Assembly (NCBI GenBank): GCA_021613535.1
Contig: CP075495.1
Coordinates: 1,426,001-1,490,000, forward strand
Origin: Adineta vaga
Taxonomy: Eukaryota; Animalia; Rotifera
DNA length: 64,000 nt
Reading direction: 5' to 3'
In this document: positions 30,268 to 41,937 of the stretch, piece after piece
How positions within the stretch are numbered: the stretch's first letter is position 1
Layout: the number at the start of each line of letters is the position of its first letter
Notes under the pieces: generated by a model
The model's input: only the letters and a program-made list of their open reading frames with translations
Told to the model about the DNA's origin: nothing
The model's database searches: none
Program-made: the position numbers and the translations under genes

Positions 30268-31266
30268 TCATCGACACATAATTTTACGAATAACAGATTT
30301 TTTTAATGTTATAATAGCCTTTCGAAATACACTTCCTCCACTAAGAGTATTGACATAAAATGGCATTGCTGTTGCAAAATAAGTACAAATTAATGCAATT
30401 TGATAGACAAAATCTTCAATAGTTAATTTTAATTGTGATTTTGGAATCGGCATTGTTAAAGTCGCATAAAGTTTCTGAATGACAAATGGAAGAGTAAAAA
30501 TCGCGAGAAAAATAACTTGAACAGAGAGCATTGTTAATAAACGTCTATCAGTTTTCTTTGATCGTGTTTGATTCATTGTCATATGACTAGCTTTATTCTT
30601 CACACTTACAGTCTTTGGTGCAACACGATGATGAGTCTTTCGTGTATTTAATATCGTCGTCCAACCAAAAACCAAAATAAATATTAAAGGAAGTAGAATT
30701 GCAACAATTGCAAATGTTAAGTCACTGACTAAACGACATTCGACATTTCGTGAAAAACATTTCAATGGTGTATTAATTAAATTAGCTCCATAACAATAGA
30801 ACAATTGTAAATGAATAAGAATGAAGAAGATCATACTAATGAATATACCACATAAGGAATTTTTCTTTGAACTCATTTATCGACGATGAACATCGATATT
30901 TGATATAAGCCATCGATCAATGGTTGCCAACATAATTAACCAAAATGTCGTAGCACGAGAAACAAATAGAATAAAAACACGAAATTTACAAATCCAATTT
31001 ATTGTTGCAGATAGATCAACGGCAATTCCCGATAAAACACGAGATGTTAGTCCAGATAAAATCGCAATGATACCAGCTGTTGAAGATCCAAGAAAAATGA
31101 TAACACATGGATTTGAACGAAGAGTACGTTGAGATAATACAAGAATATTCAAAATATTACCAACAATACCAAATATAAAGATAAATAAACCGAAATAGAA
31201 ATTGATATGAGAAAGAGTATCTTGAAGATAAGCAATAACTATAACATCAGGTGATGATGAAGACAT
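30268..31266 (-). pseudogene. Orphan class-A GPCR with one in-frame stop
   Basis: Two abutting same-frame ORFs separated by a single TAA at 30877-30879 (DVHRR*MSS versus DVHRRHLSS in a paralog). Otherwise a full 7TM. Confidence 0.85.
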
Positions 31267-32165
31267 TATTCATAATCTATAAAAGAATATATGAAATGTT
31301 TGTTAATCAAATCTTCTTTCTTAGAATAAAATACTGATTCAGTATTTTTACATTCGTCATAGAAAGCAACAGAACTAATTGTATCTGGTTCGCAAATCTT
31401 TCAAGTTGAGATAAGATATATATACGATACGTCTAGACTTTATATGAGATCACAATATGTTAATTCTAGCTATATAAGATTAGAGGGGAAAAAAAGCGTT
31501 AATGTAACTGAATCTATCAAACTCCATTTTTTTTGACAAGATCGTGTTTTTTACATTATACTTACATATGAATTATTCACCTGGAAAAAATAGAAAAATA
31601 AAAATATCTTTCGTATTAAACTTACCATATTTACGTGGAAGATAGTGATCGATTCATCATCATCTCAAAGATATGTTTACGTACGATGAATATATATATA
31701 ATATTTCTTTCCTTGTACTTATTGAGTACATAGGTCGTTGTTTAATTTTACTTTTAATTATCAGTAGCATTAAAAACATTCTAATATAAAATGTTTCCAG
31801 CTCAAAGTATACTTCAATACTAAATCTTGATTTTGTAATATTCCGGATTTCTTCATCAATGAACTGTCTCTGATAAATATGTTTTTTTTTCAAACTAATC
31901 TGACAACTATCAAGCAGGATGAAGTCAGATTAGTTCAAGTACATTTATCACCGCCATATTCATTAACATATCTTTTAATGTAAAATGACAATATAGTTCC
32001 TACAGCGACATCAAAGAAATTTTTTTAGTAAGCTGCGTAATATGCTGAGAATGCACATAATTTCAATAGAAGTGTAATTATTCAAAAATAAATGATTGAA
32101 TTTCAATCTGGATTTCTATTTTTGATTGACAGCTAAGAATTAATTAGTTGTTCTTGTTTCTTTTA

Positions 32166-32215
32166 CCCATTCGCCACGATGTGGCCTACCGGTGGGCCCT
32201 TTCGTGGCGAATGGT
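32166..32215. mobile_element. 50-bp GC-rich foldback, piggyBac-like micro-element
   Basis: CCATTCGCCACGA (32167-32179) / TCGTGGCGAATGG (32202-32214) is a perfect 13-bp IR around a near-palindromic core. Flanks TTTA/TTAA. Confidence 0.55.
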
Positions 32216-32272
32216 TTAAAGTACATGTTATAGTTTAGAGTGTATGATCAGACATATATTGTTCTTTGTTTA

Positions 32273-33313
32273 TTAGTTACAAAATTTAATTTGACAAAGA
32301 AGAATTGTTCTTAACCATTTGATGAATGTTCGACCTGCTAGACGCATTAAATTAAAAAAAGCTTTGCGAAAAACACTTCCACCACTTAAAGTATATATAT
32401 AAAATTGCATTCCATTTGCTAAATAAGTAAGAAGAAGAACAAAATTGTAGATGATATTTTCAATTGTAACACGTAAACGAGATTTAATCTCATTTGATGT
32501 TAATGTTGAATAGATTTTTTCGATTGATAATGGAATTGTTAGAAGAGCAAGAAGAATTACTTGAACTAAAAGCATTACTAAAAGACGTTGATCGGTTTTA
32601 TTCGATGATTTCGAACGTGTAGTTGTGCTTTTTGATTGACGGACTGTTGAAATTTGACCTGAATGAATACGATTTCTAGAATGACGTATATTAGTAATTG
32701 TCATCAGACCAAACGTTGTCATTACGGATAAAGGTATAAGAATAGCACAAACAGCAAATAACATATCATTTATCAATCGACATGCCATTCCATTGCTAAA
32801 ACATTTGCCTGGAGTATTAACAAGATTCGCTTCATAACAATAAAGACATTGACTATGTATGATAATCGAGAAAAGTACAACGAAAACAGTACCTCGAATA
32901 GCATTATTTATCGTACTGAAATGTCGACGACGAACATCCGTACATGACAAAAGCCAACGATCGATAGTTGCTAACATAATCAACCAGAATGCAATCGCGC
33001 GTGATGTAAATAATGTAAAACCACGAATCTTACATATCCACTGAACTGTATCAGAAAGATCAGTACTAATACCACTTAACATTCGAGGAGTTAGTCCCGC
33101 AATAATAGAGATGAGACCAGCTATTGATGAGCCATAGAATAATAATGCACATGGATTTGATCGAAGTGATCGTTGTGATAAGACAAGGATATTTAGAAGA
33201 TTTCCAACACAACCAAAAATGAAAATAAATGTAGCAAAATAACGATTGATTTGAGTAACGATACTATTTAACGATGCTATTGAATCTACATTCAATGATG
33301 AAGTTGAAGACAT
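32273..33313 (-). CDS. Intronless orphan class-A GPCR (346 aa)
   Basis: GN in TM1, CK in TM3, IDRW, seven hydrophobic segments, FYIYTLSGGSVFR. Confidence 0.9.
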   Translation of the reverse strand: MSSTSSLNVDSIASLNSIVTQINRYFATFIFIFGCVGNLLNILVLSQRSLRSNPCALLFYGSSIAGLISIIAGLTPRMLSGISTDLSDTVQWICKIRGFTLFTSRAIAFWLIMLATIDRWLLSCTDVRRRHFSTINNAIRGTVFVVLFSIIIHSQCLYCYEANLVNTPGKCFSNGMACRLINDMLFAVCAILIPLSVMTTFGLMTITNIRHSRNRIHSGQISTVRQSKSTTTRSKSSNKTDQRLLVMLLVQVILLALLTIPLSIEKIYSTLTSNEIKSRLRVTIENIIYNFVLLLTYLANGMQFYIYTLSGGSVFRKAFFNLMRLAGRTFIKWLRTILLCQIKFCN

Positions 33314-34777: not shown

Positions 34778-35090
34778 ATTCTTTGTAACAAATTGTCGTT
34801 TTTCGAATAAATATATTTTTTGTTCAGTTCGATGTTGAACTATCAGAATGAATTGCATTTTTATTGGAAGATAATGATATATGGGAATCTATTTGGACTT
34901 GACGAAGAGTTTCATGATTGATTTATAAACTAATCTAATTGTAATAAAATCATCGAAAAGTCGGATAATGATGATATCAGCATTATAAGGAGAGAAGAAG
35001 AAAAAAACAGATAAAAAAGTAGTTTTGTCAAGAATAAATCTTATGATGAGAAACCATCAGCTTCTACTCCCATCATTATCATTCTTTAAA

Positions 35091-35922
35091 ATGCATCATA
35101 ACAGTAGTTTGATGTTGGCCTTTGTTCTTAGCATTATATTAGTGTCTAGAGCACATTCTCGACAACAAGAACGAGGCTTGTAAGTTGATTATAAAATTGT
35201 CAATATAATTCGACTTAATATATTATTAGTATACCTCCAGATCTCTTACCTGATACTAGTCTTTATCATATAGTACCTCAAGGAGTGATTCTTCTTTGGT
35301 AAGTGCGTGTTTTTGATAGACTTTTTAATTCGATATATGTCTAGGAGTGGTCCTGTACATCTTGTACCAAATGGATGGGCCGTATGTGATGGAACACAAG
35401 GTACACCTGATTTACGTGATCGATTTGTTATTGGTACAGGTTCGTATAATTCTTGTATGTGAATTTCTAGATTTCGTTTTGTATTTTTCTCAAAGGTTCA
35501 AACGCACAATATTCTGTGGGTCAACGAGGTGGAGCATCAACTGCAGCACCTATTATTACTGTCCATCCAACTCGTTTAACAATCGCTCAAATGCCCGAAC
35601 ACTCTCACGGTGGTGTAACATATTGGGAAGAAGTAGATACAATTTGTTCCAAAGACGAAATAACAGCAAATCAAAGTAAACAATCTATTCTTTCAAATTA
35701 ACGATATATATATATATATATAATGACTGGTATGTTTTAGAAAACGTTACCCAACGTACTATTCAATCTGACAAATCGACAATGATTGATACTACTCGTT
35801 ATCATCATCGTCATACAATTGAACAGCAAGGTAATGGTGAAGCACATATACATGAAGCAACATCGAATTCTATCCATACTATACCACCATTTCATGCATT
35901 GATCTATATAATGAAAACTTAA
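35091..35922 (+). CDS. Secreted phage tail-collar/short-tail-fibre-like protein (204 aa, 5 exons)
   Basis: Exons 35091-35179, 35230-35298, 35345-35439, 35496-35675 and 35741-35922 splice in frame (615 nt): signal peptide + VPQGVILLWSG...PNGWAVCDGTQGTPDLRDRFVIGTG...GQRGG...LTIAQMPEHSH...HRH...HIH...IPPFHALIYIMKT*. Confidence 0.88.
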
Positions 35923-36346
35923 TTTTAAGGAAAATAATAAATATATATCCTTACATCTATCTGCAAATCTACAAATGATTACATGATAAAGAATTAAAAT
36001 TACTTAAAAACTTATTGTTCGTCTTTTCTAGTCTGCGAACATTTCGATACATCATATTATTTGTTTTATTATGGTATTGTAAAATATGACTGTTTGATGT
36101 TATCGGAAGGAAAAATATTAGTTATGTTTTTTTTATTATTACGTGTATTAAAGTAGTATCAAGGTTTTGAGTAATATAAAAGAATCAGACACAAATCATG
36201 AGTAGATGCATGTGCACAACGAGAGGAAAGGCAAAGGAGAAAGTACAAGTTTAAAAGCAAGAAAGAGAAAAAAATATTGCCTCCTTCGCTATCGAACTGA
36301 CAAAAACAAATCAACGATTTGTACTCTTCCAAATATTTTATTGCAG

Positions 36347-38035: not shown

Positions 38036-41000
38036 TCATGCAAACCACATCGTATTTTCAATGATTGAATTAAAATCAATTTTTATCGTTTGAATATCAT
38101 CTAATGTAACTAAAATATTTTCATCAACAATTCCTTCTTCAACATCGGAACTAAAATTTCAATTGTAAAGAATGAAAATTGTTTGTTTTTTTCTTCTCTT
38201 CAATTTTTAACTTACGCAGTAATACTTCGTTGATCACCAGACATTTGTCCTTCATAATCAAGATTAAGACCACGGGCTACACACAATGACGCATAATGAA
38301 CAGGTGCAGGAATAGAAACAGATTTTGTACATCGAACATCAGTATGACAAAGATAATATCTATAAAAAAACAAAAACTAACATTGACGAATATTACAAAT
38401 CAACTTGTTTATCTTACGTTAATTGTTGAATTTCATCGGATGTAAAACCAATATCATCATAGAGAACATGATAAAGTGAAGGTCTTGATGTTCCTTGAAT
38501 TGCTGCATGAGAATTAAGATAAAAATCAAATCCATTTGGTGATACAATATCTGTATCAATTACTGTACCTAAATGAATGATTAAAATATAGAAATATAAG
38601 ATTAAACATATTCTTACCAGGTTGAACATTATTCGTTTGATTTGATTGTTTATCATAAACAAAAAAACGTGTATTATGACGTTTTTTAACGATAGTAAAA
38701 CAAATTTTCGGCAATGGATTATGTCCGTATAATTCTATTTTTAATCGAAGAATTAATATGTTTGTTAATTGAAATATATTCACAAATACCTTTACATGCT
38801 TGTTGAATGGCTCGTACTTCATTATCTAATACTTTTTGAAATGCACCATCATCAACTCCAGCTCGATAAAAGACGAGTTTATTTGGTAAACGTGAATTAT
38901 ATTCAGAAAATTGTCGTATTAATTCTCCGACATAGATATGAAGATCTTTGATTATTTCGACTGCTATTTTTCCTTTCGGAGAATATTGTTGAATAACACG
39001 ACCACTATATTGTGTACCTAAAAGAAAAAGATGAATTTCTAACAAGAAATAGTTTCATATGATCATCAACTTGTTGAATCTTTTGATCCAATAATAGCAG
39101 CAATGGATGGTCGTTCACGTGAACATGTTACATGTGTACAATCAATACCAAAAAACATGAAAACATCTGAACGAATCGATGAAGAAGTTAAAGCACGCAT
39201 TAATGAAACAAGTTGATTCATTCCACCTAATTTTGCATTAAATTTCTGAGCTAAATTCTTTGAAAAGCAAGTATTACATAGTTTTTTAAGAAAAACCAAA
39301 ACTAGAAACAATTTACTTGAATATACATATCCATTTTTCGTGTTTCACTATTTGCTAAGAGTTTATCAAAACGTGTACATTGTGTAACCATACCTAAATA
39401 AAATTATTACACTGAAATATTTCTCATTCGAATTCTTTTTTCTCATTACCAAGTTTAATATTTCCAAAATATTTAATAACATGATAAATATCATCACCAA
39501 CTTGATTAAGAATATAAATAATAACTTCACATCCTAATACTTTCAAATGATTCATTCGAGATAGAATTGTATCTGGTATTGCTGGATCGGAATTTTCAAT
39601 TGCTGGTGAACTAAATCGTATTCCATACTTTGACATTGCCTAAGAAAAAAAAACGGCAAACAATTCATAGAAAGAAAATTTCTTCGTAAGAAAACAAATT
39701 TCATTTCTAACCTGTGGAATTTTACTTGCAAATTCTCTTGCCACATTAACTTGTCTTGCATCTGGTTCTTTCTGACTGACAAGTATAAGTGCCCATGAAC
39801 GTATTTCACGTGTTTTATTGAAATGATTATTTAAATACCATTTACCAATATTAACTCTTTCAATTATATCACGATCATTACCTTCAGTTGATTTATATTT
39901 GATTTCCGGTGGTGTTAGTATTCTTGCATGAATCATTAACATATCATTTGAATGAATTTTTAAACCAAATTTTTGTAAATATACATCTTGATCAAATTGA
40001 CGTTCATCAACAATACGTCGAATCATTCCATAACGTTCGCCTGGTTTAACAACTGTTTTCTTCGTTACTTTTGTGCGTTGTTCAACTGTTAAAGGTTTTA
40101 AACTTCGTTGCCATTCATCAACAGTAACTAATTCCATTGGTAAATAATGTGATTTATTCTTATCAGCTGGATTGAAAAGTTCAACGACAGGTAAATGTGG
40201 ATGCCGTAAACGAATTCGCCATTTTTCATGAAAATAATCAACAATATTGATTTGTTTACCTTGATTAGGACCTTGATCTTGTACAAATGTATATTGATTT
40301 GCTGATGTTCCAAATGATTTTAAACGATATTTACGAATTTGATTTGTATGAGTTGTCGCAAACCATAGAGATTTAAGAATCTTACGAACTAATAATGGTT
40401 GATCTTTTGAAGATATACCTTTTTAAAAAGAAGAAACTATAATGAACAAGACTTTCACGATCAGGATTTATCTAGAGATACAAATATCTGTCTAATTCAA
40501 CTTCGAATATAACTAACAATTCTAGTCATTATTTTTCATAGATAAAGATTTAGAATGTGTGACTCATAAATAGAATTTGTAATTAGAGTCATATATGTGA
40601 AGAATTTGGAATTATAATCAATGGTAAACAAAGCAAAACTATTCTATGTGAAGTATAATTGCATATACAGCTCATGAGAGATACTATTTTACAGATATTG
40701 TTAAAAGTTCAATCAAATGAATTATTCTCAACTCACCAGATCTTCGAATATCTTGACCAAGATAACATGAAATAAATTCAACTAAATTATAATTTTGATA
40801 AAAACAACAGAATGTATTGTTAATATTCAATGTTGGACCACGTTCACCTAATACAACTGCTTGATAAAATCCCGATGCTAATCCACGTCCATCTCCTAGA
40901 TTTATATGAAAAAAAAAAACAAAAATTGAATATCGAAAATCCAAAAAAAGACATTACCGAGATCATCTAATTTCTGATGTTTTGGATAGGATTGATTTTT

Positions 41001-41937
41001 AATACAAATCATCTCCGTTCGTTGTGTTTGTTTCAATAATGTTTCTAAAATTCGTACTGGATCATGTGGTTTTAATGGAATTTTTCGTTGAATAAAATCG
41101 AAAATAAATTTTAAATCATAAGTTTTAACTAAATTTATTAATAAAAATCGAAAACGATTTATTCGATCTGTTTTCTTATGTTTTATTTCACATTCATATT
41201 CTTTCTTGTATTTTAAAGTTAAATTTTCTTTTGCATATAAATTCTTTCCTTGATCATACCATACTAATGGAAAATTTTCACGTTCAATAATTGTTTTTAT
41301 AACTTGAAAACGTTCATCTTTTTTACTTGTACGCCATGAACCATCACGCATTAGAATTTCAACATCAACATCGAATTGATAAAGTTGTAATGAATCAGAA
41401 TTTTTCTCAAATTCAATTTTAAAATGATTTGTAAATATATCAATTCGTTGACCAACTGAAATAGATGTGAAAAAAAAAACATGTGACAAGATTAAAATTG
41501 ATTTACCTCGTCCAGATTGAACAGGTCGTCGTGCAAAGGAAATTAATTGAGAGTCGGGTACGACAGAACGAAGTACTGGTCGATTGAATGATTGAGAACG
41601 TTTTTTTGTATCACTTTCTACTTTAATTGTAGATGTCGAAGTAGATTCAATAGATCGACTAGTCGATGGTTTTTCTTCTACACTAGTTGACGAATAGGAT
41701 CGACGTTGAGAATGAGATGATGAACTCTCATGAGTATGACTGGGTCGATCTAAAATATCCATGACAGTTCGAAAAAACTTTTTAATCAAAAGAAAAATGA
41801 CATACGCCGTTTCGATGATCGACGATCGTCATCTATTCAAAATTGAAAAAAAAAACAAGAGATTATTTCAAGAAAAAAAACCATTCGAAATGTTTCATCA
41901 TACCATCTGGGTAATCACGACCACGTTGTGACGACAT
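38036..41937 (-). CDS. Argonaute-family protein with degenerate catalytic tetrad
   Basis: TNHF, PAZ-like [62 protein letters not shown]-terminal TMWFA*. Confidence 0.93.

Follow-up and report, generated by a model that had tools for sequence, protein, structure and literature searches.

Gene structure and transcript

The window analysed here comprises 64,000 nucleotides of the bdelloid rotifer Adineta vaga (C2:1426001-1490000; contig C2, of 16,274,841 bp, is one of six contigs in an assembly of 100.8 Mb) and harbours at 35091-35922 a small intron-containing gene, in the following called the tip gene, whose predicted product resembles the C-terminal tip of phage tail fibres. Joining of its five exons with a local script yields 615 nt with 204 codons and a sole, terminal stop, and all four introns run from GT to AG (Table 1). 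The GC content amounts to 0.18-0.30 in the introns and 0.34-0.44 in the exons, with 0.294 for the whole window. A (TA)n microsatellite is located at 35695-35731 within intron 4.

The deduced protein starts with a 12-residue hydrophobic core (maximum Kyte-Doolittle value of 3.14 over 11 residues) followed by A-H-S, which by simple hydropathy rules qualifies as signal-peptide-like. It carries the collar string ILLWSGPVHLVPNGWAVCDGTQGTPDLRDRFVIGTG, HxH motifs are situated at residues 120 (HSH), 167 (HRH) and 180 (HIH), and the C-terminus closes on PP..AL.YIMK. Three such motifs and this terminal signature, as well as an intact 204-residue frame in five exons separated by four GT-AG introns, had been described in the original prediction, and all of these elements were recovered, the exon structure by the frame check and by RNA-derived contigs.

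Table 1. Features of the tip gene, with positions counted from the first letter of the window.
Feature	Position	Strand	Description
5' UTR (untranslated region), minimum	35069..35090	+	start of X1 RNA-derived contig
Exon 1	35091..35179	+	codons 1-23 (35091-35159) signal-peptide-like; hydrophobic core LMLAFVLSIILV, then A-H-S
Intron 1	35180..35229	+	50 nt, GT..AG; joint 35179>35230 in X1, X3
Exon 2	35230..35298	+	linker and collar start (…VPQGVILLW)
Intron 2	35299..35344	+	46 nt, GT..AG; joint in X1, X3
Exon 3	35345..35439	+	collar core SGPVHLVPNGWAVCDGTQGTPDLRDRFVIGTG; Pfam Collar and PHROG matches on its own
Intron 3	35440..35495	+	56 nt, GT..AG; joint in X1, X3
Exon 4	35496..35675	+	GG…TV…L..AQMPEHSHGG; first HxH at 35600-35608; variable loop begins
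Intron 4	35676..35740	+	65 nt, GT..AG; X1, X3, X5 contig pieces abut at 35675/35741
Exon 5	35741..35922	+	variable loop with N-V-T sequon; HRH 35806-35814; HIH 35845-35853; C-terminal PPFHALIYIMKT 35884-35919; stop
3' UTR	35923..35959	+	AATAAA 35936-35941; poly(A) addition site 35959

Contigs of three sequencing runs guessed to be RNA (X1 and X3 of study P1, X5 of study P2) were mapped to 34900-36100. The X1 (644 nt) and X3 (619 nt) contigs, which begin at 35069 and 35094, respectively, and reach 35929, align in five pieces with all four introns exactly removed, the pieces abutting at 35179/35230, 35297-8/35344-5, 35437-9/35494-6 and 35675/35741. The X5 contig from the second study spans the junction of intron 4 and ends at 35959, 18 nt past the AATAAA signal, where eight A follow (AAAAAAAA). 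In the DNA run X9 of the same organism, on the other hand, the introns are retained and two haplotypes are visible. As the RNA-derived contigs match the modelled junctions and the DNA retains the introns, the splice model is demonstrated: the gene is transcribed, spliced as modelled and processed into a polyadenylated eukaryotic mRNA, its splicing agreeing with the original prediction.

Ten coding differences are seen in X9, five of the ten being synonymous. At 35801 (codon 165) one haplotype carries G for A, which changes Tyr165 to Cys and restores the Cys-H-x-H present in the orthologue of Adineta steineri and in most paralogues. Protein-database searches returned no protein encoded by 35091-35922, although I4U23_010640, a paralogue encoded on the same chromosome, was among the results together with the A. 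steineri orthologue. The tip gene may be absent from the public A. vaga annotation.

Homology to phage tail-fibre tips

Database searches were conducted with single exons of the tip gene or with the full-length A. steineri orthologue P0153 (214 aa), while the joined frame was used locally for the frame check, BLAST against fetched proteins, dN/dS and tree calculation. P0153 itself was reached by a profile of the C-terminal 120 residues composed of exons 4 and 5 of the tip gene, two A. vaga paralogues found with exon 4 and one Logan protein, which retrieved 469 proteins at E ≤ 1e-3 from 1.84 billion representatives; its identity with the window protein is 61% in a local alignment.

Exon 3 alone matches the Pfam family Collar (PF07484; E 2.2e-4, 21.6 bits) and three PHROG families at E 2e-7 to 5e-6 (phrog_5795 at 2.1e-7, phrog_8469, and phrog_1800 at 4.7e-6), while exons 2, 4 and 5 searched singly gave no Pfam match and exon 4 searched singly no PHROG match. 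With the full-length orthologue the relationship extends over the entire module. P0153 matches phrog_5795 'tail protein' at 2.1e-24 (residues 42-213) and phrog_1800 'tail collar fiber protein' at 1.4e-18 (residues 31-214, reaching the end of the profile), and phmmer against the PDB identifies the tail fibre 9qgo (3.3e-12; residues 44-214 aligned to 260-434, including both C-termini), 6ov6 (7.3e-12, over the collar) and 9nxk (2.4e-6). Equally, tblastn with P0153 recovers 91 phage records with 28-33% identity over the full length, annotated as tail fibre, collar or tail protein. In a scan of genome contigs with a 12-row alignment, proteins ending in the module are encoded at no fewer than 557 loci of bacteria and archaea belonging to many phyla, with 31-39% identity, and 6,754 database proteins contain it at E ≤ 1e-10. 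Almost all hits carry the module as their very last C-terminal part, preceded by shafts of varying kind, for instance coiled coils or collagen-like repeats.

The collar signature noted in the original prediction was thus traced to a phage tail-collar or tail-fibre module by PHROG, PDB and phage-record matches, yet the gathering cut-off of Pfam Collar (24 bits) is missed by exon 3 (21.6), P0153 (19.5) and the paralogues (17.2-17.7), which match positions 1-22 of the 57 profile positions only. This sub-threshold score is explained by the rotifer proteins belonging to a subfamily that lacks the insert of approximately 25 residues between CDG and PDLR, which is characteristic of the classic type of PF07484 and of COG4675, the 'microcystin-dependent protein' (MdpB-like). 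Classic and rotifer types are members of the same superfamily, and several relatives bear the microcystin-dependent name in the JGI collection.

The closest known proteins are the tail fibres 9qgo and 9nxk (Pseudomonas phage Pa223 tail fibre) and the families phrog_5795 and phrog_1800, which possess the same module end to end, WSG..IP.GW.LCDG.nGTPDLR.RF..G.G…GG…T…L…QMP.H.H…G..Q.H.H…PP(F/Y)YAL.YIMK, its last element being the very C-terminus; phage-tip matches are in the range E 3e-12 to 2e-24, and the PDB entries 9qgo and 9nxk hold three chains. The likeness to T4 gp12 suggested originally applies to the collar motif with which the receptor-binding domain begins (1ocy, 1pdi, 5iv5), whereas the match as such is marginal, with E 0.0036-0.017 for the T4 gp12 entries over residues 27-70 (the collar, about 40 residues), and 9qgo, 6ov6 and 9nxk are nearer. 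The rotifer protein has nothing that corresponds to the shaft of gp12, to its attachment to the baseplate or to its dependence on gp57A. In T4 gp12, a His-x-His metal site lies on the trimer axis. Among the His pairs of the rotifer module, the last HxH is invariant and the first nearly invariant in a 100-row alignment, while the middle HxH occurs in a subset of the sequences.

Judged by these alignments, the predicted mature window protein is homologous end to end to the C-terminal tip of phage tail fibres. In phages such tips are virion parts preceded by a long N-terminal shaft or attachment region, whereas the rotifer protein, with approximately 30-40% identity, is encoded by an intron-containing gene and carries a signal-peptide-like segment and a linker of about 20 residues in place of a shaft; from its sequence it would be tip-like in its working, but it is no fibre component. 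The conversion of a phage receptor-binding module into an animal gene, as originally proposed, is borne out by the PHROG, PDB and phage matches, the introns, the expression and the restriction of named eukaryotic relatives to bdelloids described below. The identity as a tail-fibre tip and the origin by horizontal transfer can be regarded as highly probable.

Predicted structure

Fold and complex predictions were performed on P0153:24-214. The AF2 monomer calculated from a 100-row alignment has a mean pLDDT of 75.7, with high values in residues 21-100 and 170-191 and low values in residues 101-160 (49-62 in the middle region). Foldseek places the model next to 6ov6 (E 5e-8, probability 1.0, TM 0.47-0.50), followed by 9nxk (4.7e-4) and T4 gp12 (1ocy; E 1e-2, TM 0.27), and a Photorhabdus injection-system fibre and a cyanophage fibre are found in addition. 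The best structural match, C24 (6ov6) from a temperate phage of Bizionia argentinensis, is a trimer and a structural protein of a prophage, which has 23% identity to the rotifer protein and differs in the middle region. A passage in PMC11821841, citing Pellizza et al. 2020, presents C24 as the receptor-binding protein of this temperate Bizionia phage.

The prediction of three copies of P0153:24-214 scores an ipSAE of 0.83 in three of three runs as opposed to 0.00 for the best of three controls, with contact agreement of at least 72% and partner pLDDT of at least 69; in the calibration set the score mark applied was attained by 21 of 30 proteins solved as same-chain pairs and by none of 23 solved as single chains. 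In the predicted trimer the subunits contact each other through residues 20-101 and 152-189, among which are the two conserved His pairs, while residues 102-151 stay outside the interface. The trimerisation put forward originally thus gains model support, limited to the orthologue.

The gene family in bdelloids

The tip gene is not unique in A. vaga, as the collar family occupies no fewer than four loci of the short type and no fewer than nine of the long type in this genome. The short-type loci are all placed near chromosome ends (C2 1.46 Mb, C2 15.47/16.27 Mb, C3 0.17 Mb and C3 20.352/20.355 Mb). The tip of the window protein has 44-61% identity to those of its paralogues and orthologues (P0002, P0153, P0006, P0003, P0004; 44-49% for the paralogues), which are joined to it in one clade and have the same two collar-flanking introns. 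What precedes the tip varies. P0002 (I4U23_010640) is anchored by a membrane helix at its N-terminus and has a stalk rich in Thr, which would expose the tip on the outer side of the cell, in P0003 and P0004 the tip follows N-terminal bodies of 370-430 residues, and the tip gene codes for what appears to be a bare secreted tip. The N-termini of P0153 and of P0006 from Didymodactylos carnosus are hydrophobic as well, that of P0153 being of the same kind but of different sequence, and the N-x-T sequon is kept at the aligned position in the orthologue.

The N-terminal body of the large paralogues (P0151:60-490 / P0003 of Adineta ricciae, L002 and L004) has no Pfam match. Its Atlas features of 0.78-0.79 for aerolysin/ETX equal chance level, and an AF2 model from a seven-row alignment reaches a pLDDT of 38; the body includes a Gly/Ser-rich stretch with alternating hydrophobic residues.

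Several further members and fragments were encountered. A fourth, more divergent tip gene (L102; G000:C3:20350800-20353400, open reading frames (ORFs) 1111-1362 and 1468-1809) lies no more than about 2.6 kb from the end of the 20,354,754-bp contig C3; it begins with a signal-peptide-like start (MKTFSLNLLIISTFSLLITG…), has several HxH motifs and ends on …PPYYVIAYIIYIGV, and its observed open frames do not contain the CDG…PDLR string. The classic long type of Pfam Collar gene is represented by nine loci (L001-L009 on C1, C4, C5 and C6), which score 64-82 bits and have stop-free frames of 207-756 aa with four to six HxH motifs; several of them share the N-terminal body of the short-type paralogue L012/P0003 (…W.G.K.IPKSF.V..L.D.TD.LQ.AI.SKQL…). 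In D. carnosus, the last 14 codons (LNPPFYALIYIMKL) occur a second time on their own at L101:3674-3715, roughly 1.2 kb upstream of where the exons mapped for P0006 begin, and this stretch may be the remnant of a duplicated copy. Furthermore, the entries P0001, P0005, P0007, P0009 and P0154/P0160 (Logan, JGI, ENA) are prokaryote-style gene calls on rotifer DNA, which read through introns or start inside the gene, so that rotifer fragments are filed as microbial proteins, some under the name 'microcystin-dependent protein'.

Evolution and selection

Among the approximately 40 best relatives, whose names define the eukaryotic range considered here in place of a search of eukaryote genomes, all that are named by organism are bdelloid: A. 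vaga, A. steineri, A. ricciae, Rotaria sordida, Rotaria sp. and D. carnosus. Within this range, a broad vertical distribution across Metazoa, which would have contradicted the original prediction, is not seen. UniRef labels some of these bdelloid relatives as 'Tail fiber protein' or 'Phage tail collar domain-containing protein'. In a 101-row tree nine bdelloid rows form a clade together with one metagenomic row (SH-aLRT 95), and in a 37-row tree the nine bdelloid rows form a clade alone (SH-aLRT 88); the secreted lineage of A. vaga and A. steineri stands as a separate clade with support of 99-100. The metagenomic row, P0037 (L103:458-1039, JGI metagenome, GC 0.38), consists of a long-type collar with insert joined to a bdelloid-like short-type tip (…MPTHNHGGQTGTENVNTLYYD…HTHIIGSEGDSQPHNNMPP…) and groups with the bdelloid clade in the larger but not in the smaller tree.

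The intron after 'LW' is common to the tip gene, the A. vaga paralogues L011 and L012, A. steineri L020 and D. carnosus L101, and the intron after G[ST]G is common to the tip gene and every paralogue and orthologue inspected. The first three exons of the A. steineri orthologue have the same lengths as those of the tip gene (89/69/95). Intron 4, on the other hand, is lineage-specific, since neither paralogue L012 nor D. carnosus P0006 has it. Because the bdelloid relatives form one clade and have intron positions in common, the family looks like the outcome of a single ancient transfer that preceded the divergence of the bdelloid families.

Comparison with the A. steineri orthologue (NG86) gives an overall dN/dS of 0.52 with a bootstrap range of 0.34-0.77 in which no replicate reached 1. 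The tip gene is therefore under purifying selection, and neutral drift, which would have spoken against the original prediction, does not fit these values. Constraint is unevenly distributed along the protein: dN/dS is 0.22 in the collar core (bootstrap 0.10-0.44), 0.33 in the C-terminus (0.12-0.85), 0.96 in the middle loop (0.37-2.75) and, as a point estimate, about 1 in the signal-peptide region.

The tip gene has the attributes of other horizontally acquired bdelloid genes, namely non-metazoan nearest relatives, confinement to bdelloids among the named animals, introns and expression. Described cases (PMC11258130; PMC3499245) are likewise foreign, situated at chromosome ends, intronised and expressed; those acquired genes are enzymes such as NRPS/PKS, RNA ligases and glucanases.

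Genomic neighbourhood

The neighbours of the tip gene encode two rhodopsin-type G-protein-coupled receptors (GPCRs; 7tm_1), a DNL zinc-finger protein (zf-DNL, DNLZ), a HAD hydrolase/phosphatase and an Argonaute (ArgoL2). No tail genes are found next to the tip gene, which has DNLZ and the HAD phosphatase as neighbours, and the HAD gene is located downstream of the tip gene in A. vaga and A. steineri alike. Upstream, at 30268-33313 on the minus strand, the two rhodopsin-family GPCR genes are arranged in tandem, one of them seemingly split into two ORFs. Downstream, the Argonaute gene with several exons extends over 38414-41789 on the minus strand.

Proposed function and alternative explanations

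Taken together, the best explanation overall, with somewhat better than even chances, is that a working A. vaga gene has arisen from the fibre tip of a phage, prophage or tailocin and now specifies a secreted trimeric recognition protein. In the course of this conversion the phage fibre shaft was replaced in the window copy by the signal-peptide-like N-terminus, and spliceosomal introns and a eukaryotic poly(A) signal were gained. The mature protein of roughly 180 residues is probably secreted, as suggested by the signal-peptide-like N-terminus, the N-x-T sequon in the orthologue and the membrane-anchored, Thr-stalked paralogue P0002, and would assemble as a homotrimer like its phage relatives. 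The conserved collar and C-terminus might constitute the trimer core, with the two conserved His pairs located between the subunits, at the sites of Zn or Fe in phage fibres, while the fast-evolving and poorly ordered middle loop (approximately residues 123-165) might bind an extracellular ligand. On the basis of phage ancestry, the likeliest ligand would be a surface polysaccharide of bacteria or other microbes which the rotifer eats or resists, and the protein might then act as a soluble recognition, agglutination or opsonin-like factor in feeding or defence, with the membrane-anchored and large fusion paralogues using the same tip as a targeting domain. A microbe-binding role of the window protein, argued from its descent, is entertained as a serious possibility that nevertheless falls short of an even chance.

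Several points weigh against this explanation. The Pfam Collar scores (19.5-21.6 bits) stay below the gathering score of the family, the signal peptide is putative, having been judged by hydropathy and by no trained predictor, and fold and trimer were predicted on the 61%-identical A. steineri orthologue and not on the window protein. The homotrimer prediction is supportive of trimerisation but may reflect solved phage fibres remembered by the model. Trimerisation of comparable phage tips often depends on chaperones supplied by the phage, such as gp57A in the case of T4 gp12, and no phage chaperone is evident for the window protein. The binding of microbial glycans is extrapolated solely from ancestry, and the dN/dS near 1 in the middle loop is as compatible with relaxed constraint as with diversifying selection. 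Finally, as the tree backbone is unsupported, with best prokaryotic identities of 35-41%, no donor lineage can be named.

The origin might be explained differently if the sequence were bacterial or phage contamination or, conversely, a vertically inherited metazoan gene, but the probability of either is next to nil. The phage-like sequence in itself speaks for contamination, whereas the four spliceosomal introns are removed in RNA, the transcript has AATAAA and a poly(A) tail, and exons of 0.34-0.44 GC sit on a 29% GC animal chromosome; contamination was rejected on these grounds, with the window being part of a 16.27-Mb animal chromosome with GPCR, DNL, HAD and Argonaute genes as neighbours. 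The argument from introns and metazoan neighbours (DNLZ, HAD) that had already been raised against contamination is upheld by the zf-DNL, 7tm_1, ArgoL2 and HAD calls together with RNA splicing. Against vertical descent, no named non-bdelloid eukaryote occurs among the about 40 best relatives, eukaryote genomes themselves not having been searched. It is improbable that the tip gene is a relic of horizontal transfer which, though expressed, has no function and drifts towards loss. Although the overall dN/dS of 0.52 is fairly high, the signal peptide and the middle loop evolve at about 1 and the chromosome-end region is rich in foreign genes, the frame is intact and the intron positions are identical in A. 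vaga and A. steineri, the collar core is constrained at 0.22 (0.10-0.44) with no whole-gene bootstrap replicate at 1, and the family has been kept since before the Didymodactylos split and gives rise to spliced and polyadenylated transcripts.

With the same origin, the protein might alternatively have taken up another job, either by binding self glycans of the cuticle, mucus, pedal-gland adhesive or egg envelope or by binding or storing metal via its His pairs. The secretory N-terminus with the conserved sequon and the invariant His pairs agree with such a role, as does the lack of 'collar' and PF07484 in the accessible portions of the text and supplements of a fungal-infection study. This alternative appears unlikely, as every characterised relative is a phage fibre tip that binds a host surface, the His pairs fall into the predicted subunit interface, and a fast-evolving loop is more readily reconciled with a ligand that is external and changes than with a fixed one of the rotifer itself. 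The His pairs of phage fibres (T4 gp12, gp37) have a structural role, being buried along the trimer axis, and do not serve as exchangeable metal stores. Still another role, and a quite improbable one, would be that of a soluble modulator, in which the free tip co-assembles with or competes against P0002 or P0003-like paralogues and thereby tunes or blocks ligand binding. Such a role is in line with the trimer core conserved among the paralogues, with its invariant interface residues, and with the coexistence of four short-type loci in the genome; mixed trimers of an intertwined fibre are, however, unlikely at 44-49% identity, and the secreted lineage has been conserved as a clade of its own in A. 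vaga and A. steineri with support of 99-100. A secreted recognition protein derived from a phage fibre tip is preferred over these alternatives.

An extension of this preferred explanation, rather doubtful at present, is that one captured fibre tip has given rise to a bdelloid repertoire against microbial surfaces, consisting of a secreted trimer, a mucin-stalked membrane receptor and effector-like fusions, in which the loop would set the specificity and which would serve feeding or immunity.

Significance

Gene transfer into bdelloids is a known phenomenon, and relatives of the tip gene already carry automatic UniRef names; on the other hand, no description of such genes, nor of an acquired phage structural or receptor-binding module, was found in literature on tail collar or tail fibre in rotifers or eukaryotes. 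In the accessible portions of the fungal-infection study, 'tail fibre assembly' refers only to T4 gp63-like RNA ligases. The tip gene is a real, expressed and horizontally acquired phage tail-fibre tip. While the described bdelloid transfers are mostly enzymes, it represents a phage structural module known only for recognising the bacterial surface, which the animal has kept under selection for tens of millions of years and repackaged for secretion, membrane display and fusions. With a protein as small as approximately 180 residues, the question is directly testable with recombinant protein. If the repertoire outlined above is real, it would be an animal counterpart of the host recognition of tailocins and phages. 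If microbial glycans are still bound, the window protein would constitute a new type of animal pattern-recognition or prey-capture protein and a natural phage receptor-binding protein at work outside the virion.

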